Part shown: positions 1,829 to 30,928 of the stretch, one piece after another
Layout of the letters: every line of letters begins with the position of its first letter
How positions within the stretch are numbered: the stretch's first letter is position 1
Source of the DNA: Amoeboradix gromovi X-113
Taxonomy: Eukaryota > Fungi > Sanchytriomycota
Length of the DNA stretch: 32,000 nt
Direction: 5' to 3'
NCBI GenBank assembly: GCA_018985225.1
Contig: JADGIF010000001.1
Location: forward strand, 63,617-95,616
Program-made: the position numbers and the translations under genes
Notes under the pieces: model-generated
What the model saw: only the letters and a program-made list of their open reading frames with translations
Database searches by the model: none
What the model was told of the DNA's origin: nothing

Positions 1829-3426
1829 TTATATAACAGTCCATTGTAAGTACTTTTCGGCATACTCTTCTGCGTCCTCGTATTCAAAGTTAGATGGTTT
1901 AGTGGTTAAGCTGACTTTCAGTAATAGCTCATTCCCTAATTCTGAAATGCAATGCAATGCATAATCCAAGTCTTCTTTTGTGTGAGCAGCCGACAAACAG
2001 AATCTAACTCTGCTAGAAATTATAGGAGTTGCTGGATAACCACTAAATAAGTACTAAATTACACTACTACAACGGCAATGCCTCTTTCTTTCATTCCTCT
2101 TGAAAATCCAGGGAGTTTTGCAGTGTTAAACAGCAATAATGGTACAACTGGCGATGCAGGGTCACCTAGAACACAAAATCCCATATTCTTTAGGTGATGG
2201 TAAAAGTATCGACTATTCTCATGGAGCTGATTAATCCGATACAGTCCCTCATTGCTTAAAATACTGGAAAACGCAGCCGTTACTTGATGAACAACTGGCA
2301 ACGGCATTGGTTCACAGTACACCATGCCGTGAGAGCTCTTTCTCAGAAACCGAGTTAAAACTTTACTACCAGCAATATAACCTCCAGCGGCTCCGAAACT
2401 CTTTGTGAATGTACCCATTAAAATATCAACATCCTTTGGATTTACTCCTAAATGCTCACATACACCCCTACCAGTATTCCCTAATGCTCCGATTGAGTGT
2501 GCTTCATCCAGGTATAAGTAAAAATTGAATTTCTTTTTTAATGATACAATTTCTTTTAAATGAACAATGCTGCCTTCCATACTGTATAAACCTTCTACTA
2601 CAACTAATATTTTTTTCCAAGGTCTATGAGTCCTGGGTTGTCCTTGAGAAATGGCATCACTTAAGACTACTGCCAAACTAGCTGCATTGTTATGTTCAAA
2701 CACCTTTATTGTGGCACCGCTTAACCTAGCACCAGTAACCAGTGAGCTGTGATTAAATTCATCAGAAATAATTAGACTACCTTTACCAACAAGTGCGGGA
2801 ATAACCGTAGAGTTCGTTGCAAATCCCATGCTAATTACAATAGCATCTTCGCTACCAATATATTCTGCCACCAACTTTTCCAATTCAACATGTGATTTTG
2901 TATTAAAATCGGACCTACTAGCACTTACGCCTAAGCCTTTAGTCATGTTTTCTTGGACAAACTCAGCACAATCACCCTCGCATTCGGCAAATCCTAAATA
3001 ATTGTAACTACTCAGATTTAAGACTCTTTGACCGAATCCAGTAAATTGAAATGACTTACAGTAGTCTTCAGTACTTCTGTCTTTAAGAGTCATAAATCTG
3101 CCAGCGGCTGAACAGATAGGCCTATTAAAACAGTCACGTATGCGTCTATAGATTCTGCGTATGAAGAAATTGCTGAAATCATTAACTAATGGAGCATATC
3201 CGTCATTGTTCTTCAAATGGGAATACTCTTCGCTTTTAAAGACTTTTCCAAAAACATCTCGGATATGTCCAAAAAGTATCAACAAAAGATAATTCAGGTA
3301 AGTAGTTATTATAACATACATTTTCACATCATCCTCAACCTTCTGATGTACATGTGAATGGACGTCACCTTTATTGCTTAATAAGGAAATTGCAGAATCT
3401 TTAGCTCTCTCTTGCTTACCCTTCAT
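1829..3426 (-). CDS. LCB2: Serine palmitoyltransferase subunit 2; spliced, exons 2063-3426 and 1829-2042 (525 aa)
   Basis: [27 protein letters not shown] and the PLP lysine motif GTFTKSFG. Removing the 20-nt intron restores the conserved [27 protein letters not shown]; ATG at 3426. Confidence 0.95.
2043..2062 (-). other. 20-nt spliceosomal intron in LCB2
   Basis: GTAATTTAGTACTTATTTAG; excision joins GT|T GGT TAT CCA = V-G-Y-P, the conserved LCB2 sequence. Confidence 0.92.
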
Positions 3427-5276: not shown

Positions 5277-6416
5277 ATGTTTACAACAAACGATGTATTT
5301 CACAGTGCTATTGTTAAATTGGAAGGAATTCCATGGGATCTTAGAGTTGAAGAGATTTTAAACATGTTGTACCCTTTTGTGCCAATAGGACAGCCTCCAA
5401 GATTGCATATACCCATAGATGTAATTACTGGAAAAACGCTTTCTTGTGCGTTTATAGAAATTGGCACTATGGAAAATGCTTATGCTTGTGTAAGGCATTT
5501 GGAATCCAGGAGACCTATTCTACATGGCAAGGCACCCAGGGTTACTGTCTCCAACCACGTAGAATTACAGAATGCGTTCTTTTCCAATGGAAGCCTTGTT
5601 CGGGAAGATGTTATTAAAATATTGACTGTTTGTAGAAACTACAAACGTCAATATAACAGAAGGTGTCCCAATAGACCGTTCGATTATGTTATATCGCTCA
5701 TACAAATATTTTCGTTTGATTCTATCCAAGAGGCAACGCAAAGAGATCAAATCTTTGAGTTCCATAAAAATGCTGTAGAGTTGTTGAAAATTTTTACTAA
5801 AAAAGATTTTTCGTACTTTAGAAAAGACTTATTGTATAGCCTGGTACTATGTGGAGTAGTATGTCTCGGATACACTTTAAAACAGCGTGAAGTACTAGTC
5901 AGAACTAGTCAAATTAATTTACCTGAGCGTTATATTAGGTATTTGAAGGATGAAGAGACTACTGGGCATTTAGTGAGAAGATTGAAGAGAAAGCTAGAAG
6001 TTCCATTGCTGGGTAAGTTTTCAGGGTTTGGTCATACTTTAATTAAACAGTTTACGCACGAAATTCAAATTCCTGATCTATATGATTTGAGTAGTCAGAT
6101 GTGTTCAAGACCATCCGGAGTTGTCCCAGTAGCTAGACATTCATCATATGAAAGCAATAGGTTTGACAGCAATAGTGAAATCAAGAGATTGACTGAGATA
6201 ATTATTGAAAACCAAACCCGAATTGGCAATATTGAACGAGCTATGAAAGACTTAATTACAATCAGACAAGCCAAAGAAGCCAAGGATGAAGCCAAAGATT
6301 TTCCATCATTAGATGTAGCTACTGAAGTATCGGAGTTATTTAAATGTGGTGCATGCTGCAAAGTTGATCATTTGCATTCAAAACTAGCGGCGCTAGAACC
6401 GGAAACCCAAATGTGA
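5277..6416 (+). CDS. RRM-domain RNA-binding protein with C-terminal coiled coil; last codons supplied by a transposon end
   Basis: AIVKLEGIPWD...GKTLSCAFIE RNP2/RNP1-like motifs; the terminal TQM* lies inside the 6404-6689 element. Confidence 0.7.
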   Translation: MFTTNDVFHSAIVKLEGIPWDLRVEEILNMLYPFVPIGQPPRLHIPIDVITGKTLSCAFIEIGTMENAYACVRHLESRRPILHGKAPRVTVSNHVELQNAFFSNGSLVREDVIKILTVCRNYKRQYNRRCPNRPFDYVISLIQIFSFDSIQEATQRDQIFEFHKNAVELLKIFTKKDFSYFRKDLLYSLVLCGVVCLGYTLKQREVLVRTSQINLPERYIRYLKDEETTGHLVRRLKRKLEVPLLGKFSGFGHTLIKQFTHEIQIPDLYDLSSQMCSRPSGVVPVARHSSYESNRFDSNSEIKRLTEIIIENQTRIGNIERAMKDLITIRQAKEAKDEAKDFPSLDVATEVSELFKCGACCKVDHLHSKLAALEPETQM

Positions 6417-6689
6417 ATTTCTTAAATAAATCATAGTTCTCTTCAATTTTATTAGCGTATTTTATAAAACATTTAGTAATACGAATAACACCATTTAAAG
6501 GATTTTAGCGACCTCTCATTGGAACGCAACTGTTGATGAAGAATGAAAAGCTATCCAATTTCGTTAGAGTTGCCACAATCCAAAAAGAAGATTCAAGGAA
6601 GATGCTTAAATGGCACTTACCCAAGTTGTCTACACTGAAGGAGTGTGGGATCTCGAAGTAATTTGAGAGCTTCACATTTAACGTAGGCG
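6404..6689 (+). mobile_element. Non-autonomous Fanzor2/TnpB-type element, copy A (retains ORF start and omegaRNA-like end)
   Basis: Inverted duplicate of 21114-21423: 148-bp 5' arm with 2 mismatches and an identical 88-bp 3' arm. Preceded by AACCG; direct repeat GA (extendable to CGGAA) on both sides; 16/19 subterminal inverted repeat 6409-6427 vs 6661-6679. Confidence 0.85.
6602..6689 (+). ncRNA. Putative omegaRNA scaffold (copy A)
   Basis: Hand-folded: closing stem TTAAATG(6606-12)/CATTTAA(6675-81); hairpins CTACACT-GAAGG-AGTGTGG and TCTCGAA-GTAA-TTTGAGA with G.U pairs; possible pseudoknot CTTAC(6616-20)/GTAGG(6683-87) at the element end. Confidence 0.6.
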
Positions 6690-6714
6690 GAACTCAAGAA
6701 ATAATAAAACAACT

Positions 6715-7362
6715 TTATTTAATATTTTTAGCTATGTCATAAACACCATTCAGTGCTGTAATAGTGCCAAACAATCCAATCGAAGACTCCGAGAACGAAG
6801 TGTATCCCAAAGAATTCAATGGAATCATTAAATCTATAAAATCCATGAACAATGACTTTTTGGAAATCAATTTCTCACGAATGAGCTGCTGCCTTTGAGG
6901 GTAATTGAAGGTCAAGTGCAACTGCTTAATTAAACTCAAAACAATACCAAAGGCCCAAAAACGCATGTGAAATTCTTTAATACTTTTTAATCGATCTTTT
7001 GAGGGGGAATAAAGCCTTAAACCATTGAACAATAAGGCATGATCGCAATAGAAGAAAAATTGCATGGAAATATTGCGAGCCACAGATAAAAAGCGAACGA
7101 CGGGATCTTTATCTCCTGTACCTTTAAAATTTTGAGTTTCTTCCACCAAAGGTACAAAAAAATCTAAGCGGAATAGCCGTAGCCATTTCCTGGTAAGTGA
7201 GCCGCTGATCATTATAGATCGGAATTTTTCTTGCAACTCACCAGTTGTGTGCTGAACTAAAAAGCGACAAAGGTATTGAACTGATCGATAAACCTTGTCT
7301 CTTCCAGCAGTGGTAGCAAAATAGATTTGAAATGTCTTCAAAGCTCTTAAACCTTTAAGCAT
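6715..7362 (-). CDS. PEX11: Peroxisomal membrane protein PEX11
   Basis: ATTAGRDKVYRSVQY, SLTRKWLRL, DFIDLMIPLNSLG...IGLFGTITAL match the PEX11 consensus. Confidence 0.88.
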   Translation of the reverse strand: MLKGLRALKTFQIYFATTAGRDKVYRSVQYLCRFLVQHTTGELQEKFRSIMISGSLTRKWLRLFRLDFFVPLVEETQNFKGTGDKDPVVRFLSVARNISMQFFFYCDHALLFNGLRLYSPSKDRLKSIKEFHMRFWAFGIVLSLIKQLHLTFNYPQRQQLIREKLISKKSLFMDFIDLMIPLNSLGYTSFSESSIGLFGTITALNGVYDIAKNIK

Positions 7363-7691
7363 TGTTTTGAAAATTCTAATTTATTAATTTTAAGGAAGAC
7401 TCTACCGATTTAAGAGTAGTTAGCTGCCTCCTGAGAAATATCTGAATGAGTTGAATAGCACTGGATCTTGAAGCAGTATTAACTAGCGCAAAATTGACTG
7501 GGTCTTGCTTAATTGCCAAATTCATTAAACTTCTAGAAAGTACTTTCTTGTAAAGATTGCTTGATTTGAAATCTATGATGCTTTTCGAATAGCACTTTTG
7601 CATCACTATATTGGATCGAGTCTGCTCTTTATAATGGCGAATGCTGATCATTATTTCACCCCAGCCTCACGTGCTACTTTGCAATTGCTCT

Positions 7692-8345
7692 ATGCATCCA
7701 CTCATCCAATTTGCCAAAACAATCGATTTCAAAGTCATTCAATATGCGCAATCTCTCTTTTTAAAGATAACTGGTAACCGGTATCAACATTTCCTAGCCT
7801 ATTTTCCTATTTTGTATTATGTGCTATGCTACTATGGAAAAAGACAGCAAACATTTGGCGAGTCACTATCTATGATAAAATTGAACAACTCTAAGATACG
7901 GCTTCTGTCGGCTATATTGCTGCAATTTATCTTTGCACCAAAGTTTCCGGAGTACAAGCATGTTTTTGAGAAACTTAATGACATTTTGTATTACTTGTTT
8001 TCAGTACCTGGTTGGCTAGCAATATTTAATCTAAAATACAACCTGACTAGGCCTCCTTTGCCATTTGACAAATCTAAGGTTTTCCAGTACATCGGAATTT
8101 GTTCAATCGTTTATTACGGGATCCAGGAGACTAAAAGATTAGCCGCAATGACTATATCTGAGGGAAATGAGTCTAATTTTACTTGTTCTTTATGTCTCGA
8201 TCCAGTATCTAGTATTACCAGCTTTCCTTGCGGGCATACTAGCTGCTGGAGCTGTGCTGTTGGTTGGGTCCAAAAGCAACCGAAGTGCTACATCTGCAGA
8301 GAGAAGTGCGAGTTACAAGATCTTATAATGCTAAACGGAAGTTAA
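7692..8345 (+). CDS. PEX10: Peroxin 10, RING-finger E3 ligase
   Basis: QTFGE (TLGEEY-like Pex2/12 motif) and C-terminal RING CSLCLD...PCGH.SCWSC..GW...PKCYICR; start uncertain (7641 or 7692). Confidence 0.75.
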   Translation: MHPLIQFAKTIDFKVIQYAQSLFLKITGNRYQHFLAYFPILYYVLCYYGKRQQTFGESLSMIKLNNSKIRLLSAILLQFIFAPKFPEYKHVFEKLNDILYYLFSVPGWLAIFNLKYNLTRPPLPFDKSKVFQYIGICSIVYYGIQETKRLAAMTISEGNESNFTCSLCLDPVSSITSFPCGHTSCWSCAVGWVQKQPKCYICREKCELQDLIMLNGS

Positions 8346-8354
8346 GTAATGGGT

Positions 8355-11300
8355 TTATTGCACAGCCTCGGCAAAAGTCTCCGAAACAACTTGAGGTCCA
8401 TTCTTCAGAGAGGAGTTTTTTTGCACTTTAGTGTGAGTCTGTTTTTGATTGAACTCTATGATCAAATTTTGCAAAAACCTAAATAAATTAAATGTACACA
8501 TATCCGGATAAAGTTTGCTGCTTCTTGTTAATTCTACCTTTGATGAGTATAGTTAATACGAATAATAGAGCAACAGTCAAGCAGAGCCCCAAGACCAAAA
8601 TCGTAGATCTCCTTTTTGTCAATAGATCTTCGAGCACAAGAAGACTCATCATATCTTCTAACCTTTTCCAGGATGACTTTGCGATGGCAGTGTTCATCCT
8701 GTCTGACAAATCATTGCAGTCTATCGTAAAGCATTCCAAAACCGATCTTACGAACTCGTTCACTTCAAAATCCAACGATTGATCACAAATATCACTCTCA
8801 CAATTCTTGTCCAGAATCAAGCCCTTATAGTATTGAGAATGGCTCAATTCCACGAAAAACGGGTCTCTTATTTGTGATGCTAGTTCGGCCATGTTTTCGG
8901 CCATGAAAAGCAAGCTGAAGTTTGCGGCGTTGTAGAATGACTCTTGATGAATTGAAACTAGAGAACTCTCATTAACTTTAAGATATCCTAGAGATTGAAT
9001 ATGATAGAACGAAAACAAAATGTTTGACGCTGCAGAAGCTAATTTTGTTTGAAAATAAGCACAATCTATAGCCTCCTGTCTAACAGTGAAAATCAAATAC
9101 AGAAACACTGCTGTTATACCAACAATTGAAAAGGCCAAAAATAATGACATCAAAAAATTGTTTAAACTACTTTTAACTTTGATATTATATGAATCAACGG
9201 CGCTAGCTAAATTGGCATAATGATCTTCAACAGATGAAAAGCTTTGGGTTTTAATCTCCAGCGTTAATTCTGAAATTTCTCGAGTTTTTGTCCGAATATG
9301 TACTAACATTTTTTCTTTTTCTCTATCAACGTAATACAAGTAAGTGTAAACGACAGTCGCAATAAGAATGATTGAAGCTGAAATAATAGGTAAAAATGAA
9401 TACTCAAAGTAGTTCAAATTGTTTTCAGCAAATCGAGATTTCAAGTTGTTATTGAAATCGTTCAATCTCCCGTTTTGTAAAATGCTTGTATTCATAGTAA
9501 CAAAGCTTATGAATGCTCTTTTTAGATCACTAGGCAGCAAGAGGTTTGTGTACAAAATCATGTGATCGAGATTCGCATCAAGATAACTAGCATCAATTAA
9601 TGTGTACTGAGTTGCATTTATTAAGCTTGGAGATTTTATAGTGGATGCATCTAAAAACTGCATTGTAGCATAGCTATCTAGTCTCCCCATGTAAATTAAG
9701 TTTGTTGTGCACTCTTCTAGCTCTAAAAGAGTCCATGAAAAGCTTTCTCGGCTTTGAAAATAAGATTCGTCTGCTCTTTGTCTCTTAAATGGTAAAGTGG
9801 ACGCAACTTGTGAAAAACTTAACTGAAGCGCTACATAATCCATTAGTAGGTAGCCGTTCAGTAACACACATGTAACTAAAGAGGCAAACAAGATAAAAAT
9901 TGATATCTTTAATGCATAATGAAACTGTTTTTGCCATTGTAATTGTTGAAAGCGATTTTTTTTCATGTTTTCGTTAATAAGTAAGAATTTCCCTACATAA
10001 TCGAATTGAACAAACGAATCTGATCTTTCATTTTCTTCTTCCGTGACAGCGGATATATCCAGAATATCCTTCTCTACGCCTCTGTTTGTATCAAACATTT
10101 GCATGGTCTTTACAACAAAATCCCCAGCTTCTAAATCATTTTCAACAGAGTTGAAATACGACGCCAATAGCCTTAGAGTTGCAGGATCTTGGGGATATTT
10201 CTGAAATAATTCTTTAATACTATGAAACGATTTATAAGCATGATCTACAAACAAGTGCGAAAGTATGTGCAACTTGGCGTCTTTTTCAGAGTTCGCCGCC
10301 TTAAGCAACGCATACAAAGACGTAGATGCTTTTATCAATTGTTTTGCACAAAATTCTTTAAAACTGTCCTTCATTAACACAGTCAAATCATTTTCTGATG
10401 AAAACTCGACCAAATCCTTTAATTTTCTAATTGTAGATACCAATATGAGGGTATATGAAGACAAAATTGTTCTTTTTCCTAAAATTATTTGATTTTCAAG
10501 TTCGACAGCTCTTGTCTTGTCTTCAATTACTCCAAAGTTCATCCAGCAGTACCTCACAATATTGCATTTTAGCATTGCGCAATTATCCAATTTTTTCTCT
10601 GCACTATTAAGACAATTGTATACTGTATTAGCTAAAAGACAATGACCTTTATGTCTAGATGAAAGCAAAGCATTGGGAACATCATTGCTTTGCTTTGATG
10701 AACTTGCAGTTCCACCATTAGAAGTGTCGCCGGAATCGATTTCCTCTACCAAGTTAAAATTAGAAAGAAAATGTACCGATACTAAAAATTTCAGCAAGCT
10801 TTCCATTGGAACTAAAAGTGGCAGCTTTTGGTTATACTCTGTCTGTGTCAAATGGCCTTTTAGTAGGGCTTGTGTGATTCGGATGGCATTGATATCAGGT
10901 AAGAAAGATCTGATATGTGGTTTCAAACCGCTATAAAGTAGGTAAAACAGCAATGCACCTTGTACAACAGAGAACACGGAGCTTGAAAGATTTAAGTTTG
11001 GAAAAATCAAAAAAACTAACTGGAAAACCATGAAAAACAAATAAGACCAATAAAATGCAAGCTGAACTTGGCAAAGAGATATAGACTGAAAAGATGGCAT
11101 TATGTATCCTCTGTAGCTTAAATGTATTCCAAAGAGTATGCCAACAGAAACAGAGAGAATTGGTGTGTGCAGCAAGAAACATAACCCTTGCACAAGTAAA
11201 AGCATAATTTCACTAGCTTGAGAATTCCTATCAAATCTTCCAATTCCTTGATGCAGTGGTAATTTATAATAAAGATTTAAATAAGACGAAAAGACAGTTA

Positions 11301-11739
11301 AAATCATTTGGCCGCCAACTACGAGGAAACCCAGAACACTAGTAATCTCACTTTTGGTAGATAAATTTCTCTCAAGAGAGTCTACAACACTTAACGTACA
11401 GTAAAACATTGGCGGTAACATAACATATCCATTCATAAGTAGAAGCAACCTAATGACCTTTATTGATTGGGCAGTTGGGTATAAGCCAGTTTCTAGATTA
11501 TAAACGACCTTTCCTATCAAGTATGTCTGCAGTGATATTAGAAACATGCCAAAATACAAAAAACCATAAGCTTTATCATTATTTGCAAAATCGACCCATG
11601 TTGAACTAATGTGATGTAAAATTGCCAAATAATTGAAGCAAAAGACAGAAAACAACTGTAGAGCTCCAGATAGCTCCATCAACCTACTTTGATGAAATAC
11701 CAAAGTGTTAAATCTCATGAATGAATCTGAAAATCCCAT
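8355..11739 (-). CDS. Large multi-pass membrane protein, TmcB/TmcC-like; probable exons 8498-11739 and 8355-8478
   Basis: N-terminal multi-TM block and central LFQKYPQDPATLRLLASYFNSVEND resembling the TmcB/TmcC TPR-like repeat, with further TM pairs. A 19-nt intron extends the frame to a stop 9 nt from PEX10. Confidence 0.6.
8479..8497 (-). other. Probable 19-nt spliceosomal intron
   Basis: GTACATTTAATTTATTTAG, same GTA...TATTTAG pattern as the LCB2 intron; excision opens 41 more codons filling the gap to PEX10 (an alternative 21-nt donor at 8499 is possible). Confidence 0.65.
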
Positions 11740-11790
11740 TCGACTTTGGCCTTTGTTGAAACAAAAAAAGATTTATTGAAAGGAAATATT

Positions 11791-12219
11791 TTATTTCCAG
11801 TTGTCCCTGTGAAAAACAGGATCCTGCAGAAACGGAATTAATATCTTTGAACTGGTTTGAACCAAAGGGTGTCCCGCGACAATTTGCAAAAATCTCTCAA
11901 GTCCTTTCATTCTGGTGTCTATTACCTCATCACTAAACCTGTTTCTAAGTACCTTCCCTGGAAGATTTGGAAGATGAACATGAGGACATTCTCTCTCCAA
12001 ATAGCTTTTGAAAATTTCGCAATCCTTGTATCTTCGACGAACGATACTTTCTTTGATTTTAAACAGCGGCAAATTAGTTTTCAAATGAACCTCATAAGTG
12101 GTATATAAGTTGCTTGGATTTTCTGGATTCTCACTCAACGGATTCTTTACTCTAATTTCTAAATAATTTTCTGGCGTTGAATAGGTAGAGTGATTAGACA
12201 GTTTTTGTTCAGATATCAT
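11791..12219 (-). CDS. SNX3: Sorting nexin 3 (PX domain)
   Basis: PENYLEIRVKNP, YTTYEV..KTNLP.FK, VRRRYKD, LPGK, GLERFLQIVAGHPLVQT; likely ATG at 12219. Confidence 0.9.
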   Translation of the reverse strand: MISEQKLSNHSTYSTPENYLEIRVKNPLSENPENPSNLYTTYEVHLKTNLPLFKIKESIVRRRYKDCEIFKSYLERECPHVHLPNLPGKVLRNRFSDEVIDTRMKGLERFLQIVAGHPLVQTSSKILIPFLQDPVFHRDNWK

Positions 12220-12356
12220 TCCCTCTCTAGTAAAGGAAATCCTTATTGTAGGAGTCGTTAATAAGCGATCCCATAAAGCACTCATATAGTAATATTGTTT
12301 GAGGGGTGAATAAGTGGAATAATTTATTTGTGCAAATACGGCTCGTAAACAAGGCT

Positions 12357-13121
12357 TCATTGGGCTGCTGAAGAATGAATATGGTTTGCTAAATTCTGAA
12401 TTTCTTTGGAAAAGATGGAGTTACTTAAATCAGACAGGATAGGAGAGCCTTTATCCATGTTTTCTGATATTCTAGGATCAAAAGGTAGACTAGCTAAAAA
12501 TTCAGATCGCTTCCAGAACTCTGTGTTTGCATCAGGAAAAAGTGAATGTAATTTGCTGCAAGATGGACACTGAAAGGTGGACATGTTTTTTACCATTCCC
12601 AACAACGGGATTTTCACTTTTTCAAGCATCTGAACGGCTTTCTGGGCATCGATTATACTAATAGACTGCGGCGTACTTACTACAACGCAACCGTGTAGAT
12701 TTAATTGTTGTACAACGGTAAGCTGTGCATCTCCGGTTCCAGGTGGAAAATCAATTAATAAGTAATCCAAATCACTCCATTTGGTATGCCAAATCAAATC
12801 TTGAACAGCTTTCATCACCATTAAGCCTCGCCAAACAACTGCTTTTTTAGAGAAAAGTCCCATAGACATAAATTGAATTCCATGATTTTTTAGTGGAATC
12901 ATCCGACCCGTATCATCTATTTCTGGCTCCCTAGATAAATTCATTATTTTAGGGATTGAGGGGCCGTAAACATCTGCATCCAATATACCTACTCTACCTG
13001 GAAGTGTATGAGCTAAACAAGCAGTTACACAGCTTTTACCCACGCCTCCCTTCCCGGATAGAACTCCAATTACTCGCTTCACAGTTGGAATATTCTTTGG
13101 AACCATTAATCCTAGTGCCAT
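12357..13121 (-). CDS. IND1: Mrp/NBP35-family Fe-S cluster carrier, mitochondrial Ind1/NUBPL type
   Basis: SGKGGVGKS, DADVYGPSIP, VVWRGLMVMKA, DFPPGTGD, VSTPQ and CPSC motif; first ATG at 13121. Confidence 0.85.
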   Translation of the reverse strand: MALGLMVPKNIPTVKRVIGVLSGKGGVGKSCVTACLAHTLPGRVGILDADVYGPSIPKIMNLSREPEIDDTGRMIPLKNHGIQFMSMGLFSKKAVVWRGLMVMKAVQDLIWHTKWSDLDYLLIDFPPGTGDAQLTVVQQLNLHGCVVVSTPQSISIIDAQKAVQMLEKVKIPLLGMVKNMSTFQCPSCSKLHSLFPDANTEFWKRSEFLASLPFDPRISENMDKGSPILSDLSNSIFSKEIQNLANHIHSSAAQ

Positions 13122-13145
13122 CCAAACAATGCTCCTTGAAGCCAA

Positions 13146-13697
13146 ATGCTTTGTAACGATGATGAAAAAATTTTAGATTTAATTTTCTCAGGTCCTATGG
13201 ACGGCTATGTGTTTGATTCAAATGCTACTACAGTTGATAGCTGTCCCGAAACTTCCAAAATAGTTACAAATGAAATTTCACAGCAGTTAAAAGAAAAGGA
13301 AATCATTGCAGTTCATTTGGCAGAAGATGGAAAAATAGATGAAAGCATTTTGCTTTTTAATGAAATTATTAAATCAAACAGAAGTTATTATTCGGTATAT
13401 AACAATAGAGCTCAGGCATTCAGGATAAAAAAAGAGGACAAGAGTGCATTAAATGATTTAAATTTTGTTATCAAAAACTGCAGGGACTCTGAAGTTTTAA
13501 AGCAATCGTATATCCAAAGAGCAATTATTTTGAAAGCCTCAGATCCAGACCAAAGCTACACTGATTTTTGTAAGTCAAACGCATTGGGTCAGAAAATCGC
13601 GGAAAAAGCAGTTGTTGAAAACAATCCTTACAGAAAGTTGTGCAATTCGATGGTGTCGAAAGTTTTACAGCAAGAAATATCTGGCAATAAATTTTAG
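13146..13697 (+). CDS. TTC36: Tetratricopeptide repeat protein 36-like
   Basis: DEKILDLIF, SVYNNRAQA, QSYIQRA, NPYRKLCNSMV match TTC36. Confidence 0.8.
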   Translation: MLCNDDEKILDLIFSGPMDGYVFDSNATTVDSCPETSKIVTNEISQQLKEKEIIAVHLAEDGKIDESILLFNEIIKSNRSYYSVYNNRAQAFRIKKEDKSALNDLNFVIKNCRDSEVLKQSYIQRAIILKASDPDQSYTDFCKSNALGQKIAEKAVVENNPYRKLCNSMVSKVLQQEISGNKF

Positions 13698-13729
13698 TAA
13701 TATTTAACTTTTTTTGTTAGCAAGAGGGT

Positions 13730-14674
13730 ATGACAGGTGGAAGAAAAGAAAATAACTTCAGAAAAAGTAGAAAGGAAAGGCAAGTTGTTAAAAAGAAAAA
13801 GACAGAGACTATCTATGAAAAGCCCAGCTATAATAATAACATACTTAAACAACCGCTTCCTCGACTTTGTAAACTTAGCATAGCTTTACCTGGAAGCATT
13901 ATTGACAATTGCCAAGGGCTTCAAATGAAGACAATTATGGCGGGTCAAATTGCAAGAGCGTGTGCAGTTTTCAGAGTCAGTAACATTTACGTTTTTAATG
14001 ATACAGATACAGTATGGGGCGCTAGGTTTATGGTCAAGGTTTTGAATTATTTAGAAACCCCGCAGTATTTAAGAAAGAGGCTATTTCCTAAGAGTGACGA
14101 CATGCGATTTTTAGGTATACTGCCTCCACTAGATGTCCCTCACCATTTCCGAAAATCTGATAGGTACGAGTATCGAGAAGGCGTGGTTGTTGAGCAGCTA
14201 AAGGAAGCGTGCCTAGTAGACATTGGCGGTGAGAAACCAATTATTTCGACTGTTGTGAGGGAAACAAATACGCGAGTTACTGTTAAAGTCGATTATGACT
14301 CAGATCTAGGAGTCGAGGGTGTAATTGTTGAAAAAGAAGAGGCTGCGAAAAAATCTTACTGGGGATACGACGTTCACACTACAAAGACCATATCTGAAGT
14401 ATTGGAAAGTGAAAAATTTGATTTCGTACTAGGAACATCTGAGCGGGGATTGTCTCATGAGGAACTGGTTGTCAAAGACGACGTGAAAAATGCACTGATT
14501 CTGTTTGGTGGCGTTGATGGGTTAGAAAAAGCGAGTGACCATGAGGGAGAGACTAAACCCCTTAGCGAGAGATTTGACTTCTACATTAACATAAATCCTC
14601 ATCAGGGATCCAGAACTATTAGAACAGAAGAAGCAGTTTTGGCGACATTAAGTTTGCTGAATTCCATGTTTTAA
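13730..14674 (+). CDS. SPOUT1: SPOUT-family RNA methyltransferase (SPOUT1/CENP-32-like)
   Basis: LSIALPGSII, GQIARA, YLETPQYLRK, GILPPLDVPHH, YWGY, GTSERG, QGSRTIRTEEA. Confidence 0.9.
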   Translation: MTGGRKENNFRKSRKERQVVKKKKTETIYEKPSYNNNILKQPLPRLCKLSIALPGSIIDNCQGLQMKTIMAGQIARACAVFRVSNIYVFNDTDTVWGARFMVKVLNYLETPQYLRKRLFPKSDDMRFLGILPPLDVPHHFRKSDRYEYREGVVVEQLKEACLVDIGGEKPIISTVVRETNTRVTVKVDYDSDLGVEGVIVEKEEAAKKSYWGYDVHTTKTISEVLESEKFDFVLGTSERGLSHEELVVKDDVKNALILFGGVDGLEKASDHEGETKPLSERFDFYININPHQGSRTIRTEEAVLATLSLLNSMF

Positions 14675-14692
14675 GCTTTTATTAAATTATCA

Positions 14693-15340
14693 TTACTCAT
14701 AAAGGTACGACTTCATAGTCTTTCTCATTCTTTGAAACGCAGCTTGCGGACTATCAAATGCAGGTCTTACGTCGCAATAGAAGGTTGGGTTATCATTTTC
14801 TTCTTCTCCCTCATAGTAATCAATAACGTATCGGACATGCCTACCACACCTGTCAATGATCCAATCATGTCTGTCAAAAGCATGCTGATTGTGCACCATT
14901 GCTACCCACTTAGATTTCCAAGTTGGACTACTTGCTTTGCCTTGAAATCTCAACAGCTTGGGATTTGGACATACGCCTTTGTACTCACTCTCCCACTTCA
15001 GGATTTCCTTCCAGACTTCTTCGTTCAGAAAATTATGTATGTCTACCATAGATTCAATGCTTTCTTCTGGTGCAGCCATGTCTTTTTTCTTTAATGCGTG
15101 ATAAAATTGCTGGGGACTGGGATAAGACCAGTTTTCTTCATTGCTGTTACTTCCGGGTCCATCAGCGTGCTCCGACTTAGGTATTGTAGATATTTCTCTC
15201 TTCTTCGACAGTTCAACAGTTTGGTCTGGATCCTTTTCTTGTGAATATTCAGGCATCAAGTTATTTGGATTTATTTCTTCCTTTTTGTTATGGTGTGGGC
15301 ATCCGCTCTTTGATGCTCTTTGAAATGACTCGTTTTTCAT
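14693..15340 (-). CDS. CYC3: Holocytochrome c synthase (cytochrome c heme lyase)
   Basis: GCP heme-regulatory motif, WSYPSPQQFYHAL, IHNFLNE, FDRHDW, RYVIDYY, DVRPA; start 15340 or 15373. Confidence 0.92.
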   Translation of the reverse strand: MKNESFQRASKSGCPHHNKKEEINPNNLMPEYSQEKDPDQTVELSKKREISTIPKSEHADGPGSNSNEENWSYPSPQQFYHALKKKDMAAPEESIESMVDIHNFLNEEVWKEILKWESEYKGVCPNPKLLRFQGKASSPTWKSKWVAMVHNQHAFDRHDWIIDRCGRHVRYVIDYYEGEEENDNPTFYCDVRPAFDSPQAAFQRMRKTMKSYLYE

Positions 15341-15610
15341 ATCTAGGGGTAAATCAATTCGCAAGCTCCTCATTAAAATCCTAGTTTTCTAGAAATGGAG
15401 AATTTCTATCAAGACACTAGCAGTGATTGTTGCTCCGTTATAGTGACTACTCATCCATACTGAGAAGCAAACAGCGGTGCTAACGTACTTAAAAGCTTCA
15501 TTTTTGTGACCGCTAAAGGTAGTTCAGATGTTCTGATTTTTGCAATCTGGGTAAAATAGAATCGTCAAATGCACCATGGGCATAGATTAAATAAGAATTA
15601 AAAATTTTAC

Positions 15611-17260
15611 TTATCCCAACTTCATCAGTATTTCCTTCTTTCTTCCACCTTTTTTCTTTTTGCTGCTGTTATTTGTATTATCCTCACTTGCCGTGGAGTC
15701 ACTTAATGCACTCAATTGAATTGTCCTCCTTGGCGGAACTGTTTCTGCCACCGCTTCTTCTTTCTTTACTGGTAATGGAACATCTGTCCATAGCCATGGT
15801 AAATATATCGGATTACCAACTTCTACAATTTTATCACCTCGATTTACCATTGTTAACATCGATCTTGGTTTCTTGTCTTTCATTTTGGGTATGTTATTAT
15901 TAACCGTATATCTACTTACACAATCTGCAACATTAAGGTCAGGAAATTTACAGTTGCTCTCGTAGAAAGGCTTCCACTCATTTTTCAGCTGATTTCTAAA
16001 TTGAACAGGACTAGTACAAATAAGCCATTTGATTAATGCAGACACGTCTGGGTATGTAAACAGTCTAGGCTGAAGCCTAAGTAGTTCTTCATAGACAGAC
16101 TGCGCATTCAAATGACTCTGCTTGACTAAAAACGACTGGAACATTGCACACCTCTCATCGTGGTGAAACACAGCGCATAGAACCTTGAGGTCTATGTTCT
16201 GGCTGCATAAACATTCACTGTTGGACCTGTTTAACCTAGGGGCCCTCTGATATGTGGTAGAATCGCTGGTGCTGTGATCTTGAAAGTGTGACGTCGGTTT
16301 AGTTAACTGGCCAATCCTCAGTTTGCTATTGATAGCGTGAGAAGCGGATAAATGTGACAAGTAGTCTAATTCTGTGGCAAACCCTAGTAACCCATCTGTG
16401 TTGATGCAATATTCGCACGCAATATGATCTTCTTTATAGTGTTTTTTGAGTTCGTTTAAGTTTTTAAACCATAAGCTTTTTCCTGATTGCTTACAAAGTG
16501 AGCATTCCTCGTGTCTCTGCTTCATATGATGCTTTAAATATTCATCGTTCACAAATCTTTGACTGCAGAACTTGCAGAGGGGATGACCCGTAAAATTGAT
16601 TAGAGGGTTGACAACATTATTAGAATGCGTAATATCAACAGTGATTTCGTCACTGTTATTGACAGTAGATTGCAAAAACAATTTGTCACCTGTTTTAATA
16701 TGGCTAGCAAGAAGATCAGACGGATATATGTTCAGTTCGCTGATGAATTTCTTAGATTCCCTAATGCATATTTCACAATATTTGTAGCCGTTTTTGATGT
16801 TATCATGTTGAGTTAAATGATTTTTCAATTCTTCAAACGCAGCGTAGGTTTGCTTTGTATACTTAACGTGCTCAATTATACCACCAGTAATAGGTTTATT
16901 ACGAACAGCGGGAGTGAAGTACAAGTAGGTGTTCCATTTCTTTGTGCAACCTGGAACCGGACAAGAAAATCCCAAAAGATTCATAACATGAAAATAAGCG
17001 TCATTAGACTTGTAATAAATCTGCCATTTTTGATGAGCATAAGGATACACATTCAGATCAGACGTACTGCCTTTGCTTCCAATGATAATGTAGCTTATAG
17101 GCTTTTTGCAATAAACGCAATCGGTACTTTTAAATAGTAAAAACATGCGCAAAGCACATACAGAACACATTTCGTGATCGCATGACATCCTGGCATTGTA
17201 CAAAAAAGGATGCGAACAAATGGGACAAACTGTTGAATTTGAACTGGACATTTGGGACAT
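15611..17260 (-). CDS. HEL2: Ribosome quality-control RING E3 ligase HEL2/ZNF598
   Basis: N-terminal RING CPIC...CDH.MC.VC.LR...CVYCK, then C2H2 fingers including FTGHPLCKFC; KKKKG tail. Confidence 0.85.
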   Translation of the reverse strand: MSQMSSSNSTVCPICSHPFLYNARMSCDHEMCSVCALRMFLLFKSTDCVYCKKPISYIIIGSKGSTSDLNVYPYAHQKWQIYYKSNDAYFHVMNLLGFSCPVPGCTKKWNTYLYFTPAVRNKPITGGIIEHVKYTKQTYAAFEELKNHLTQHDNIKNGYKYCEICIRESKKFISELNIYPSDLLASHIKTGDKLFLQSTVNNSDEITVDITHSNNVVNPLINFTGHPLCKFCSQRFVNDEYLKHHMKQRHEECSLCKQSGKSLWFKNLNELKKHYKEDHIACEYCINTDGLLGFATELDYLSHLSASHAINSKLRIGQLTKPTSHFQDHSTSDSTTYQRAPRLNRSNSECLCSQNIDLKVLCAVFHHDERCAMFQSFLVKQSHLNAQSVYEELLRLQPRLFTYPDVSALIKWLICTSPVQFRNQLKNEWKPFYESNCKFPDLNVADCVSRYTVNNNIPKMKDKKPRSMLTMVNRGDKIVEVGNPIYLPWLWTDVPLPVKKEEAVAETVPPRRTIQLSALSDSTASEDNTNNSSKKKKGGRKKEILMKLG

Positions 17261-17779
17261 GCTCTAAGAACAGTAGACTTGGGGTAATAGAGGGTGACAC
17301 GCGATTATATTTTACTCATGGCGATAAACTCGTCATAAGTCTATGATTCCCAGAATATCAAGAATTTCCATCCAGAAACTGAGAACTCAAGTAAATCTGA
17401 TAAGCATTTGCGTTTAAAAATGCATATAGACTGTACTGAGAAATTACTGTGGATCTAGCAATACAAACTTTCTGCTATAGATGGAAGAATTTCGCTGACT
17501 GTAAATAGAGTAAAGGTGAAGATCCAGCAACATTTGAGTACTCCTAAAGCATAAACGTTAAGAAGTAAATGGAATGTCAAAGCAAAAAATTTCTATCTTT
17601 TAATCCACAAAAAATGCGTAGTGAACCTACAACCATTGCGATGAAGTCTCTTGTGGCATTGTGAATACTAATTATAGAAGCTTTGAGCTCTTTAAACTTA
17701 GTAAGCAATGGTGAAAGGTCTGGAAAAGAGAGGAACTGGTAACAGCAAATTTTCTGCTAAAGCACACGTTACAAAATAG

Positions 17780-18285
17780 CAGATATTCTACTCGAGAGTT
17801 TTAACTTTTTGAGGCATTTTTTGACAAGATGTCTGGTTTTTATGGCGCTAATGAGTTAAATCTGATTAAATAATATTGTAGAAGCTAACCGTTTAACTGA
17901 ATAAACCATTTATTGTAATAATATGAGCTAAATCACTCCAACATCTGTCTTTCTATGTTTTACTAGTTGCATAAAAACACCATACTCTTGTTATCGCCAA
18001 TTAAAAATGGCCCTAAATGGTCTCCTGAATATTTCGATTTTGAGAGATCGCTGGCAGATGCAGAATGCAGTCTTTTGCATCCAAATATTTAGGAACAAAA
18101 TTATTATCCAAAGAAAGGTGAAAGGTAGTGGTGGAATATAACGAAGCATTTATTGGCCAAATATACACAAGCTGTGGTTCTCCGTAGAAAACCAGTTTGG
18201 AGGCATTAGCATGCACAAAATTTCATTTTAGACGCAGATAGAGATCATATGGCACAGCAAGAAGCATATATTTGAGATGTATGCA
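17780..18285 (+). pseudogene. Fanzor2/TnpB RuvC nuclease pseudogene
   Basis: Motifs in the correct order across stops and frameshifts: YSRVLTF (17789, cf. RuvC-I DPGVRTF), LHKNT, RMQSF...KLLSK, VVVEYNEAFIGQIYTSCG (18125-78, cf. RuvC-II E..TS..C..CG), DADRD (18231-45) and ARSIYLR (18257-77, cf. DRD.NGARNI). Confidence 0.75.
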
Positions 18286-18410
18286 TCCTATCTATCCCAC
18301 TCAGTGTAATACAAACAGCCGTCATGGAGCTTTTTTCAGATTCACTTGGGAAGTCATTGATTTTGTAGTAAATCAGGACTTTTATGAGTTTATTGCTCTA
18401 TGAACAGATA

Positions 18411-18741
18411 TGAGATCCAATTTCAGAAAATATCCCCAAATTCTAGTCGGAGGACCTCTTAGAAAGATGTGTCAGTCCAATAATATGCCATCAAGCTTTC
18501 TCTCAATATGAAAAATGCACTGGCAAAATATCTTGGCTGATTAGCACTTGAGCATATGTTGCAATATCTCAACTGATAACCATTTTTGATATTCTGTCTT
18601 GGTGATTGTAATGACGTCTTGTTCACAAACAAGGCAGCATCTGGATGCCTTTCTTTCGTATCTGGTGACATTATAATGGGAGTGTGTCTTCTAAGTGTTC
18701 CTCCTACCTGGAAATGAGGACAATTCGTCAGAATGGGTCCA
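18411..18741 (-). mobile_element. Fanzor1-carrying TIR element, internal-deletion copy C
   Basis: Both ends homologous to 30283-30928. TG...CA termini flanked by a perfect 5-bp duplication AGATA (18406-10 and 18742-46). Interior translates YERKASRCCLVC (18660-18625) and GYQLRYCNIC...ASAFFIL. Confidence 0.75.
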
Positions 18742-18757
18742 AGATATTTCGAAACCG

Positions 18758-19180
18758 ATGTTTCTTCAGAACGGATTTCATGTGCACTGGAAAAATGACA
18801 AGCAAGAAATTAATGAGCCATGTTTATATTTTAGAGTTACAGAAGATGTGATATTTGATCCTTTTGAATTCCCGGACTGCAAGACTAGAGGCAATTTTGA
18901 TTTGGAGATGTCAAAAGAAGAATGGAATCAAAAGTTGGATGTCTGGTGTCCGAGTCAGTTGGAAAGTGTTCATTTTTCTTGCAGATACCAAAACGCAAAA
19001 GGCCTTTGCAAGCTGTACCAGCCTCTTCCCTCTGACTGTCTTGTAATCCCTAATGAACAATTGCAAGACATTACTTACACAATTCCGGTAAAAAATGACG
19101 CGCATGCTAGTTTTGTAATCTACAGTACATTTTCTTATTTTATATTTGTGAGCTGGCTGTTAATAAGTAAAATGAAATAA
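18758..19180 (+). CDS. PIG-X/PBN1-like GPI mannosyltransferase I subunit (reduced)
   Basis: GFH, VIFDPFE, DLE, HF..RYQ, TIPV and a C-terminal TM helix fit PIG-X; ATG at 18758 (the ORF-track extension lies in the transposon end). Confidence 0.65.
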   Translation: MFLQNGFHVHWKNDKQEINEPCLYFRVTEDVIFDPFEFPDCKTRGNFDLEMSKEEWNQKLDVWCPSQLESVHFSCRYQNAKGLCKLYQPLPSDCLVIPNEQLQDITYTIPVKNDAHASFVIYSTFSYFIFVSWLLISKMK

Positions 19181-19183
19181 ATA

Positions 19184-19668
19184 TGAGATCTCCATGAGTC
19201 GCAGTCAAATATTATAATAAACACGTTAATTTGAAGAAAAACTCATTTGGATTTTCAAAAGAACAAGGCCCAGTGAAGCGTCGATGAATTCTAAAGAATT
19301 TCCACAGACAATCTAGATTTTCTATCTCACATGGTAATATTTTGCACTGCGTACTGAAAATACTTGCAATCCATTAAACATGACTTCGGCTACATAGCAG
19401 AACCAATTGTAGTGCAGTAGATCAATTGAACTGTTGATTAAATAGTGGTCATATTGTCAAAAATCTCGTCTACAGTTTGTGCATTCGTTAAAAGCGAAAA
19501 TTGTCTCGTGATCCACGAGTAATAAAATACGGTTAAAGTTTACAGTTGCTCACAAATTGTAGATTAAAAATGGCATAGCAGTTAAATGAATTTAGATATT
19601 ATTCCCGAGCCATTCTCAAAGATTAATTTACAGCACATTATTTAAGGGGTTTCGCAGCTGTATCTCAA
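19184..19668 (-). mobile_element. Possible highly decayed Fanzor1 relic
   Basis: Starts with ATA|TGAGATC like 18411; minus-strand fragments LLLVDHE...ECTNC, LVLLCS and AVQNI in Fanzor-like order; weak. Confidence 0.3.
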
Positions 19669-19674
19669 ACGTAA

Positions 19675-20331
19675 ATGAAGAGGTTCATTTCTCCATCAAT
19701 TTTGTCGAGCGATTTCAGCAGACTTTACGAAGAATGTTCGCTCTGTCTAGACAAGTCAAAATACATCCATCTTGATGTTATGGACAACCATTTTGTTCCT
19801 AACCTGACATTTGGTCCGCCAATTATAAAATGCCTAAAGAAAAGGTTAGAGCAGCAAACAAAGCCCTATTTTCTAGACTGCCATTTGATGGTAACCAATC
19901 CAGAATCAATTATACCTTTGTTGGAGGGACATGCGGACAGCATAACTTTTCATTGTGAGGTCTCAACTGATACTCTGAGTTTGATTGAACTGTGTCGCAA
20001 GCACGGATTAAAAGCCAGTATGGCTATTAAACCCGAAACTCAGTTATCCACCGACTTAATCAGTCTTTGCAAGTACTTAGATTCAGTTTTAATTATGACT
20101 GTTAACCCTGGCTTTGGTGGGCAGTCTATGATTATGGAATGCTTAGATAAGGTCAAAAAATTGCGAGCAGAATATCCTGAATTAGATATTCAAGTTGATG
20201 GCGGTATAAACGTTAAAACAATTTCAATGGCATCAAAAAGCGGTGCAAACAATTTCGTCGCAGGAAGTGCGATTTTTAAACACGAAAAAGGCATTCACTA
20301 TGCAATTGATGAATTAAATAAATTAATTTAA
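19675..20331 (+). CDS. RPE1: Ribulose-phosphate 3-epimerase
   Basis: ISPSILS, HLDVMDNHFVPN, DCHLMV, MTVNPGFGGQ, IQVDGG, VAGSAIF. Confidence 0.96.
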   Translation: MKRFISPSILSSDFSRLYEECSLCLDKSKYIHLDVMDNHFVPNLTFGPPIIKCLKKRLEQQTKPYFLDCHLMVTNPESIIPLLEGHADSITFHCEVSTDTLSLIELCRKHGLKASMAIKPETQLSTDLISLCKYLDSVLIMTVNPGFGGQSMIMECLDKVKKLRAEYPELDIQVDGGINVKTISMASKSGANNFVAGSAIFKHEKGIHYAIDELNKLI

Positions 20332-20344
20332 GTTTATTTAGGCA

Positions 20345-21052
20345 TTACGCATCTTCTATTAATGGTTCTATAAAGTATTCTACATAAACATTTTGTTCTT
20401 TTATGGGCAAAAGCATCTGCCATTGCAAAACACCATCTTCGTTTAGTCTAAGAGTAATCTTACTTGCTTTTTTTAGGGTATATTTGAGATTTGCAAACTT
20501 TTTGTACATGTACCGTAGAGAAAGCGATTCTTTCGGATATTGGAATCGAAACTTCTCCAAATTAGATAACGAAGAACTAATTCTGGCGCCCATGCTTGAT
20601 ATTACCTGAAAAGATAAAGACTTCTCGATTTTCAGTTCAACCACTCCATTCAGGATCGGAACTAAGAATATCGATTTTAATAAAGAAGAGGGTTGTATAA
20701 TGGTATCAAGTATTACTTGAGATGGATCCCAATAGGATAGGAAGTTCTGACCCTCCCACACAAGAGTCGGAATTTTAATCATGGCTTTCTCGTCGCTTAG
20801 AGTTAGTTCAGATTCCGTAAATCTAATTTCAATGTAGTCTTCGAACAGTTTGATGCCCTCTAAAAATGGTTTAGAGCTTATTATGATTGCAGTTGTACTA
20901 GGATTAAATTGAGTGAACAACTTTGAGGAAATGTACAAAAATGTGTCAAACGTACCTATTTTATATCCAGAATCAGACGCTGCAAGCGTTATGGAAGGAT
21001 TCTCTTTAAACATGTTTACATTGTCAAATGCGAATGCTGGTAAAATACTCAT
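20345..21052 (-). CDS. RAD1: 9-1-1 checkpoint clamp subunit Rad1 (yeast Rad17 family)
   Basis: PCNA-like size; FDNV, LF..F and C-terminal LKKASKITLRLNEDGVLQWQ...VYVEYFIEP typical of Rad1; ATG at 21052. Confidence 0.72.
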   Translation of the reverse strand: MSILPAFAFDNVNMFKENPSITLAASDSGYKIGTFDTFLYISSKLFTQFNPSTTAIIISSKPFLEGIKLFEDYIEIRFTESELTLSDEKAMIKIPTLVWEGQNFLSYWDPSQVILDTIIQPSSLLKSIFLVPILNGVVELKIEKSLSFQVISSMGARISSSLSNLEKFRFQYPKESLSLRYMYKKFANLKYTLKKASKITLRLNEDGVLQWQMLLPIKEQNVYVEYFIEPLIEDA

Positions 21053-21113
21053 TACAAACAACGGAGAACGTTATTTCATTTAAAAAAAGTTGCTTCATCA
21101 GAATGAATATTCT

Positions 21114-21201
21114 CGCCTACGTTAAATGTGAAGCTCTCAAATTACTTCGAGATCCCACACTCCTTCAGTGTAGACAACTTGGGTAAGTGCCATTTAAGCA
21201 T
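21114..21201 (-). ncRNA. Putative omegaRNA scaffold (copy B)
   Basis: 88 nt identical to 6602-6689, directly downstream of the TnpB-like C-terminal fragment and ending at the element boundary. Confidence 0.6.
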
Positions 21202-21423
21202 ATTTTTCCCTACATTAATAAAATAATACCTGGATTAATATCTCTACGATCTTCGTGACCACACGCATTACATTTGCTTTTCATTCTTCATCAACAGTTG
21301 CGTTCCAATGAGAGGTCGCTAAAATCCTTTAAATGGTGTTATTCGTATTACTAAATATTTTATAAAATACGCCAATAAAATTGAAGAGAACTATGATTTA
21401 TTTAAGAAATTCACATTTGGGTT
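21114..21423 (-). mobile_element. Non-autonomous Fanzor2/TnpB-type element, copy B (retains Zn-ribbon/RuvC-III fragment and omegaRNA-like end)
   Basis: Inverted duplicate of 6404-6689. On the minus strand it is preceded by AACCG and flanked by AG (extendable to CGAGAA) on both sides. The unique middle (21202-21275) reads in frame MKS-KCNACGHEDRRDINPGIILLM*. Confidence 0.85.
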
Positions 21424-21510
21424 CTCGGTTAACATAACGAAATTCTTTTTTGGCAGAATGTTATCGGACTTCGTATGAGTTTATGAAGTAACAAATTTTA
21501 GGCTCTAGAA

Positions 21511-21583
21511 GGGCTTGTGGATTAATGGTTATATCGTCTGACTTCGAATCAGAATGCTCGGGGTTCGAATCCCTGCTGGCCCT
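21511..21583 (+). tRNA. tRNA-Arg (anticodon TCG)
   Basis: Cloverleaf: acceptor GGGCTTG/CTGGCCC, anticodon stem TCTGA/TCAGA with loop CTTCGAA (TCG at 21544-46), T-loop GGTTCGAATCC, followed by TTTT. Confidence 0.92.
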
Positions 21584-21613
21584 TTTGAGGATCCATTTTA
21601 TAATTATTGATAT

Positions 21614-30282: not shown

Positions 30283-30928
30283 TGAGACTCATTCTGAAAA
30301 AATGTCCTAATTTCCAAATAGGTGGAACGCCTAGAAACCACACTAGGTTACCCATTATCATTAATTCATCATACCCAACACAACAAAGAAACAAAAAGAG
30401 CAAAAAAGACGATAATGACGTACTAGGATAAACAAAGACAACAATTCAAAATCACCACATCCAAATCATATTAAACTACAATTAAGAGAATACGCGCAAG
30501 TATATCGTCACATTCCTGCACAATCTTTCTATCTATCAAGTGGTATCTGGAAACAAAAAACATCTCAGGATATCCAAATTACCAAGGCTTCTAAAATAAT
30601 GTTCAAAAACATTTCTTACATGACTTTCAACCCAGACACACTGAAATGAAATCATAATGAAATCGAGAAAAGAAATATCGAATGGAAGAAAAAGGCGCTA
30701 TGTAGTGGTATGCTGGGGTGGTGGACATTTAGACAGAATGTGAAAATGGTTATCGTTTGAGATATTGCAACACATGCTCAAGTGCTACTGAGCCAAGCTA
30801 TTTTGAAAAAGATACTGCCAATGCATTTTCATGTTGAGAAAAGGCTTAATGGCATATTATGCGACTGAGACATCTTTCCAGGAGGTGCTCCGACTTAGAG
30901 CTGGGGACATTTTCTGAAATTGGTCCCA
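30283..30928 (+). mobile_element. Fanzor1-carrying TIR element, internal-deletion copy D
   Basis: Left ~75 bp and right ~200 bp homologous to 18411-18741. Imperfect TIR TGAGACTCATTCTGAAAAAATGTCC vs TGGGACCAATTTCAGAAAATGTCC. Fragments NNSKS...SFYLSSGIWKQK...KASKIM, RYVVVCWGGG and GYRLRYCNTC...YFEKDTANA. Confidence 0.72.

Follow-up and report, generated by a model that had tools for sequence, protein, structure and literature searches.

Here, we describe two short, inverted copies (A and B) of a transposable element in the sanchytrid fungus Amoeboradix gromovi X-113 (GCA_018985225.1), found in a 32,000-nucleotide stretch of contig JADGIF010000001.1 (C435:63617-95616; hereafter the window). Both copies are very probably non-autonomous "ghost" derivatives of a ~2-kb transposon of the IS607 type, encoding a TnpA recombinase and an overlapping Fanzor2 nuclease, and the family was recently active and is now most likely orphaned or nearly so. 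Its architecture, an (A)CCG motif before the left end, right ends closing with GGCG, internal deletions and the scatter of young copies can all be read from the DNA itself. The short-read assembly is fragmented (10.55 Mb in 1319 contigs); the window has a G+C content of about 36% and is densely filled with eukaryotic genes, and the flanks of both copies are host genes. No mention of Fanzors in sanchytrids was found in the literature searched.

Results

A comparison within the window aligns the left arm of copy A (6397-6551, plus strand) with that of copy B (21276-21430, minus strand) over 155 nt at 97% identity, and the right arms (6599-6689 and 21114-21204) over 91 nt at 99% identity. Alignment bears out the arms described in an earlier note on this DNA, with 2 mismatches over 148 nt on the left and full identity over the final 88 nt on the right. 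The motif AACCG directly precedes both copies, as that note had stated (6397-6401, plus strand, for A; 21426-21430, minus strand, for B). The note's location of the copies (6404-6689 and 21114-21423) holds, but the limits are corrected to 6402-6689 (plus strand, 288 bp) and 21114-21425 (minus strand, 312 bp), since the two bases after CCG are part of the left end of the element. Copy A lies in the last codons of a host open reading frame (ORF; 5277-6416) on the same strand, and copy B between a gene for a Rad1/PCNA-fold protein (20345-21061) and a tRNA-Arg gene (21510-21584). In keeping with the empty site reconstructed for copy A, the host frame without the insert regains a plausible stop three codons on, ending ...EPELKK* rather than the ...EPETQM* found with the insert. 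The new stop of this ORF thus comes from copy A (6402-6416), and the remaining element would be 3' untranslated region.

Searching the genome with copy A yields 48 BLAST pieces, a left-end pattern has 28 matches against 1 in the control (25 of the 28 fall at family sites), and a right-tail pattern 101 against 0, so the copies are not chance matches. The tail is common to sister subfamilies, and most of its 101 sites are counted as pattern matches alone. At least 22 left ends belong to the family; left junctions were analysed in 21 copies, and ten copies are complete, measuring 249, 288, 312, 367-370 (six copies) and 1455 bp. The six ~369-bp minis have one deletion junction in common, lie in unrelated flanks and are 95-98% identical to one another, which argues that the mini itself was amplified by transposition and bears out the earlier view of the family as young. 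Copies A and B are most simply explained as further deletions of this ~369-bp form.

The 1455-bp copy (L013) has the same ends and encodes TnpA (PF00239, E 2.3e-15, with a weak match to a MerR-type helix-turn-helix) and the N-terminal half of the nuclease. TnpA of a sister element (L032) matches PF00239 with E 5e-17, and tnpA overlaps a downstream TnpB-like/Fanzor ORF in L013, L032 and L044 and in intact relatives (L070/L083). An IS607 layout follows from the overlap of the MerR-type resolvase gene of L013 with its TnpB-like ORF. After its left end (6402-6535, plus strand; first two bases GA, family majority TA), copy A retains the first ~17 codons of TnpA (6536-6587, plus strand), with a start identical to that of the L013 ORF; TnpA start codons are also kept in copy B (21277-21291, minus strand). 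The nuclease has RuvC-I as ALDPG in three family copies (L016, L033 and L034) and DPG in all intact relatives, and another copy (L028) has a Glu six residues before the zinc finger (E-x6-C), the canonical Glu position being replaced (LLP), together with RDINP; DPG and the shifted Glu are published Fanzor signatures. PF07282, a C4 zinc finger followed by the RD of RuvC-III, scores above cut-off on contigs C528 and C459. Copy B carries the CxxC of the second zinc finger and the RuvC-III motif RDINP (21230-21275, minus strand), 75% identical to the intact relative P0081, whose best PDB match is the mimivirus Fanzor2 9B0L (E 3e-15). The Fanzor2 assignment proposed earlier is upheld by TnpA and a Fanzor ORF between the same ends in L013 and by DPG and the shifted Glu in family pieces; a full-length copy was sought too, and a TnpA/Fanzor ORF lies between the ends, but an intact RuvC ORF was not found.

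CCG stands directly 5' of 17 of the 21 left ends (background 0.0036); of the other four, two carry CCG at a distance owing to small deletions and two carry CTG instead. Other copies therefore share the CCG-like motif, the lack of which the earlier note had named as a point that would count against its proposal. A occurs at -4 in 14/21 left junctions and at -5 in 11/21, so the motif is (A)CCG; the earlier target-adjacent motif (TAM) of about (AA)CCG keeps its CCG, seen across copies and intact relatives, but not its full AACCG. In copy A the predicted TAM is the end of 6397-6401, its last two bases being the putative CG core. Right ends terminate in GGCG, where conservation stops, and most left ends start TA or TT regardless of the sequence after the right end. 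Terminal inverted repeats (TIRs) are absent, the only inverted motif being 9 bp long and sub-terminal (6409-6417 inverted relative to 6671-6679 in copy A), and the 5' motif and the right end both terminate in CG. The bases that the earlier note saw repeated at each copy are present (GA/GA at A, AG/AG at B), but a 2-bp duplication occurs in 4/10 complete copies and is absent in the other six, so that the target-site duplication (TSD) proposed earlier is rejected as a feature of the family. The simplest reading is IS607 recombination by a serine recombinase within a shared CG core, with CCG as the predicted TAM and no TSD. The filled right junction reads GCG+guide and not CCG+guide; in ISXfa1, the TAM GGG is cut and the right-end CGG is not (bioRxiv 2023.08.09.552727). 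No circle or joint junction was seen in the sole sequencing run holding the locus, which is a DNA run kept as contigs.

The crossover position is not fully settled, and the junctions themselves provide the counterweight: the left-end dinucleotide equals the right flank in 4/10 complete copies, above shuffles (p 0.02, in a small sample), left-end starts vary (TA, TT, GA, AG, AA), and the first right-flank base is A or T in 16/17 (p 0.006). The core might then be the two bases after CCG, with mismatch-tolerant recombination whose heteroduplexes resolve to apparent 2-bp duplications such as those at A and B. IS607 TnpA accepts non-matching dinucleotides in E. coli (PMC10690162), so a crossover placed two bases later is kept as a minority rival. 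We judge it unlikely: nearly all copies have CG on both sides, one metagenomic lineage has a constant left-end start (CT in 5/6) despite varied flanks, and an older family in the same genome, with CAG before the left end and GGAG at the right end in parallel to CCG/GGCG, follows the same core logic.

Intact relatives are found in four metagenomic lineages with proteins of 574-607 aa (P0081, P0084, P0085 and P0086), which share 43-52% aa identity with each other or with the A. gromovi sister. TnpA is called upstream where annotated, and all terminate in TAGGCG. In the P0084 lineage, six copies with different flanks have CCG before the left end. The probable left ends of the P0085 and P0086 lineages show CCG as well, and P0081 has one candidate CCG, unverified. 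Flanks of the intact relatives (L074:2-349; L073) hold a Thg1 gene and DUF4116/orphan genes within AT-rich DNA. A viral origin was considered and set aside: in IMG/VR neither proteins nor DNA patterns gave a match, in searches able to reach close relatives only.

The last ~90-110 nt of the element fold better than shuffled sequences (z -2.5 and -2.1 in this family; for intact relatives, -6.3 and -3.4) and form the predicted omegaRNA scaffold: a small hairpin, another whose loop would pair with the six bases preceding the final G, and a long terminal hairpin. Although the terminal hairpin is wholly different in sequence between lineages, the fold and the loop/arm pairing are conserved in five lineages; one loop/arm pair is swapped from C-G to U-A (compensatory) in a non-homologous stem (L081), and a G-U is turned into G-C in another lineage (L087). 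The same type of pseudoknot is described for IS607 TnpB and Fanzor2. In copy A, the right end (6602-6689, plus strand) holds Fanzor2 C-terminal codons (to 6661) that overlap the predicted scaffold, with the pseudoknot loop at 6628-6633, the terminal hairpin at 6644-6676 and the pairing arm at 6683-6688. In copy B, the C-terminal codons and a complete predicted scaffold occupy 21114-21209 (minus strand; loop 21175-21170, arm 21120-21115). The putative guides are the adjoining host flanks, at 6690-6709 (plus strand; family conservation stops at 6689) and 21094-21113 (minus strand), their length being taken over from other TnpB/Fanzor systems. The structured, conserved right-end scaffold claimed earlier is thus supported by the fold scores and the conserved pairing. 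Several points weigh on the other side: covariation by RNAalifold on close lineages is weak (2/19 pairs), part of the scaffold, pseudoknot loop included, doubles as coding sequence, the A/B subfamily has a weakened loop-presenting stem, copy A lacks the first stem's 5' strand, and the only run holding the locus is of DNA. The left arm was rejected as a structured RNA (z +0.7), as was a group I intron/IStron or other known RNA family, since Rfam finds tRNA only.

No intact cognate nuclease was found in the assembly by searches with the sister protein, intact P0081 and family RuvC-II DNA, which weighs against a functioning system. All cognate-clade matches are broken by stops, frameshifts, deletions or contig ends; the best candidate, on contig C459, belongs to a sister subfamily (~67% DNA identity) and is 52% identical to P0081 over residues 15-577 with one stop. 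The earlier suggestion of a nuclease encoded elsewhere is therefore not borne out, with only broken cognate copies in a fragmented short-read assembly, in which absence is not proven. Because every assembled cognate copy is broken, the family is most likely recently active but orphaned or nearly so. A Fanzor2 on contig C542 was rejected as the cognate nuclease, being 27% identical to P0081 and having an unrelated 3' end. This locus (G000:C542, L059) is the only open Fanzor seen here, of 569 aa with three RuvC motifs and an overlapping TnpA, and belongs to a different clade.

A system active at present, in which an intact Fanzor2 that is unassembled or collapsed uses the minis as omegaRNA donors, and copy A by read-through from its host gene, is an alternative that we regard as unlikely. 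Several contigs, among them C690, C178, C197 and C995, break off within long copies and could thus conceal a full one; right arms are near-identical (22 of 136 pairs identical over 85 nt), and copy A has the same orientation as the host ORF at whose end it lies. Against this, left arms all differ from one another over 120 nt, the RuvC-I/II region is covered by only four or five short family pieces, the longest with a stop, and the sole run with the locus is DNA. Empty alleles or guide targets of A and B were not found either, one match with 1 mismatch for A equalling the control count. A more elaborate version, rather less likely again, would have a nucleus-adapted system still at work, with a hidden intron-containing Fanzor2, dozens of ghosts as a guide library, and families that partition targets by core (CCG/CG vs CAG/AG). 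If true, it would be a natural model, in a eukaryote, of homing driven by Fanzor2 and of co-evolution between TAM and recombinase core.

A 20-nt GT..AG insert lies right after RDINP in copy B (21210-21229, minus strand) and in the ~369-bp minis. In a second subfamily the insert is 18-19 nt long with the same GT..AG ends, and a third subfamily and all intact relatives are without it. Once the insert is removed, the reading frame is exactly that of the sister subfamily, and the codons on either side run on in the frame of the relatives; the spliced Fanzor was compared exon by exon, with the two exons taken separately. In the window, host genes regain conserved motifs only when introns of 20 and 21 nt are taken out, and one of these shares its last 9 nt with the insert. 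Short host introns occur at 2043-2062 (minus strand) and near 27933 (minus strand), in genes for serine palmitoyltransferase-like and lipase-like proteins; intron size is not discussed in the main text of the A. gromovi genome paper (PMC8371127). We conclude that the insert is, with high probability, a spliceosomal intron. Introns in Fanzors are known (PMC10530073), and one of host type would tie the element to nuclear expression in the host lineage. The insert could instead be an inactivating duplication that truncated the nuclease before the subfamily spread, given that its 3' part resembles the preceding exon bases and that, unspliced, it stops the frame 7 codons past the RuvC-III Asp; we find this improbable, because GT..AG is kept while middle and length vary (18-20 nt) across two subfamilies, the sister frame is restored exactly, and host introns have the same size, one with the same last 9 nt. 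The whole mini-element as an intron (left junction usually GT, TAG before the right-end GCG) was also rejected: two surplus bases would remain after splicing, GT is missing from A and B, and the host introns seen measure 20-21 nt.

On all sequence criteria tested the family is of the IS607/Fanzor2 type, a class set by signatures, architecture and PDB match, and it cannot be filed as a functioning OMEGA system. That these are elements like miniature inverted-repeat transposable elements, with short TIRs and a TSD, moved by a DDE transposase and carrying a Fanzor remnant as passenger, is scarcely credible despite the 9-bp inverted motif and the duplications at A and B, since that motif is sub-terminal and inside an RNA hairpin, a TSD is not general, and the sole transposase between the ends is an IS607 serine recombinase, the TnpA-bearing long copy by itself already largely refuting it.

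Other repeats are present in the same genome. The older IS607/Fanzor2 mini family (L050-L069) has copies of ~600 bp, mostly 80-90% identical, and dominates the PF07282 matches (560 candidates, of which all 150 scored are above cut-off); a faint relic of it lies at 15364-15453 in the window. Young-family copies are often within ~1.5 kb of the older family (L008, L009, L014, L017, L018, L019, L024 and L028), which suggests shared insertion-tolerant spacers. A third dispersed family is seen at 18417-18600 and 30743-30923 (~80% identical; 116 genome candidates), and one of its frames has CxxC and then EKD-x-A-x-A, loosely like the zinc finger and RuvC-III of a distant TnpB/Fanzor, a likeness that is unverified. 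Adjoining it, a further dispersed repeat (18109-18384) is ~70% identical to several other contigs.

Discussion

From the biology of IS607, TnpA supplied in trans would have excised elements as circles and inserted them at CCG, crossing over within the CG dinucleotide common to target and element, with no true duplication. A transcript leaving the right end may have given an omegaRNA, with a scaffold of about 90-100 nt and the flank as guide. Fanzor2 would then have cut empty CCG+flank sites, favouring retention or homing, and the filled right junction (GCG+flank) would have been spared. Because they kept both ends, the minis could have been mobilised and could have donated guides while an intact copy existed.

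The family provides an unusually clean case of IS607 transposition in the nuclear genome of a cellular eukaryote, transposition in the nucleus being argued by the sharp ends, unrelated flanks, fixed target motif and probable host-type intron. It also defines a small Fanzor2 clade with the motif HRDINP, proteins of 574-607 aa, intact natural members and a compact predicted scaffold. As the TAM is readable from sequence and intact natural members exist, the CCG prediction is testable at once. The surprise is limited, since the type of system, ghost loci, Fanzor introns and a CCG TAM have each already been published.

Among known systems, ApmFNuc/ApmFz2 of Acanthamoeba polyphaga mimivirus (PDB 9B0L; PMC10530073) has the same TnpA with overlapping Fanzor2, DPG, shifted Glu and right-end RNA, and its TAM is likewise the motif at the element start (PMC10530073). 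It differs in its TAM (GGG, vs the CCG predicted here) and in having a viral and not a fungal nuclear host; in A. gromovi, moreover, the scaffold overlaps the last ~25 codons, RuvC-III reads HRDINP[G/C]KN and an intron is probably present. The CCG TAM that the earlier note mentioned for a Naegleria Fanzor2 was indeed measured, for NlovFz2 of Naegleria lovaniensis (PMC10432273), and is the one predicted here; no Naegleria protein is among the close homologues found, so kinship is not established. Fanzor ghost loci without an ORF, with ends and omegaRNA, are described for four species, and ghost RNAs of S. punctatus function as scaffolds (Saito 2023, PMC10432273); A and B similarly keep ends and a predicted scaffold without an ORF. 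ISXfa1 and CboIStron share recombination at a dinucleotide core, a TAM that equals the target site, a right-end TAM variant that avoids self-cleavage, and a pseudoknot between a hairpin loop and guide-adjacent bases (bioRxiv 2023.08.09.552727; PMC10690162), but they are prokaryotic, with a GG core and a (T)GGG TAM, and CboIStron has a group I intron, of which Rfam finds none here. Eukaryotic IS607-like elements in fungal and protist genomes also lack TIRs and TSDs and are mostly fragments (Gilbert and Cordaux 2013, PMC3673617; Bao and Jurka 2013, PMC3627910). The former survey found no evidence for transposition in eukaryote genomes (PMC3673617), whereas the dispersed copies in A. gromovi show it.

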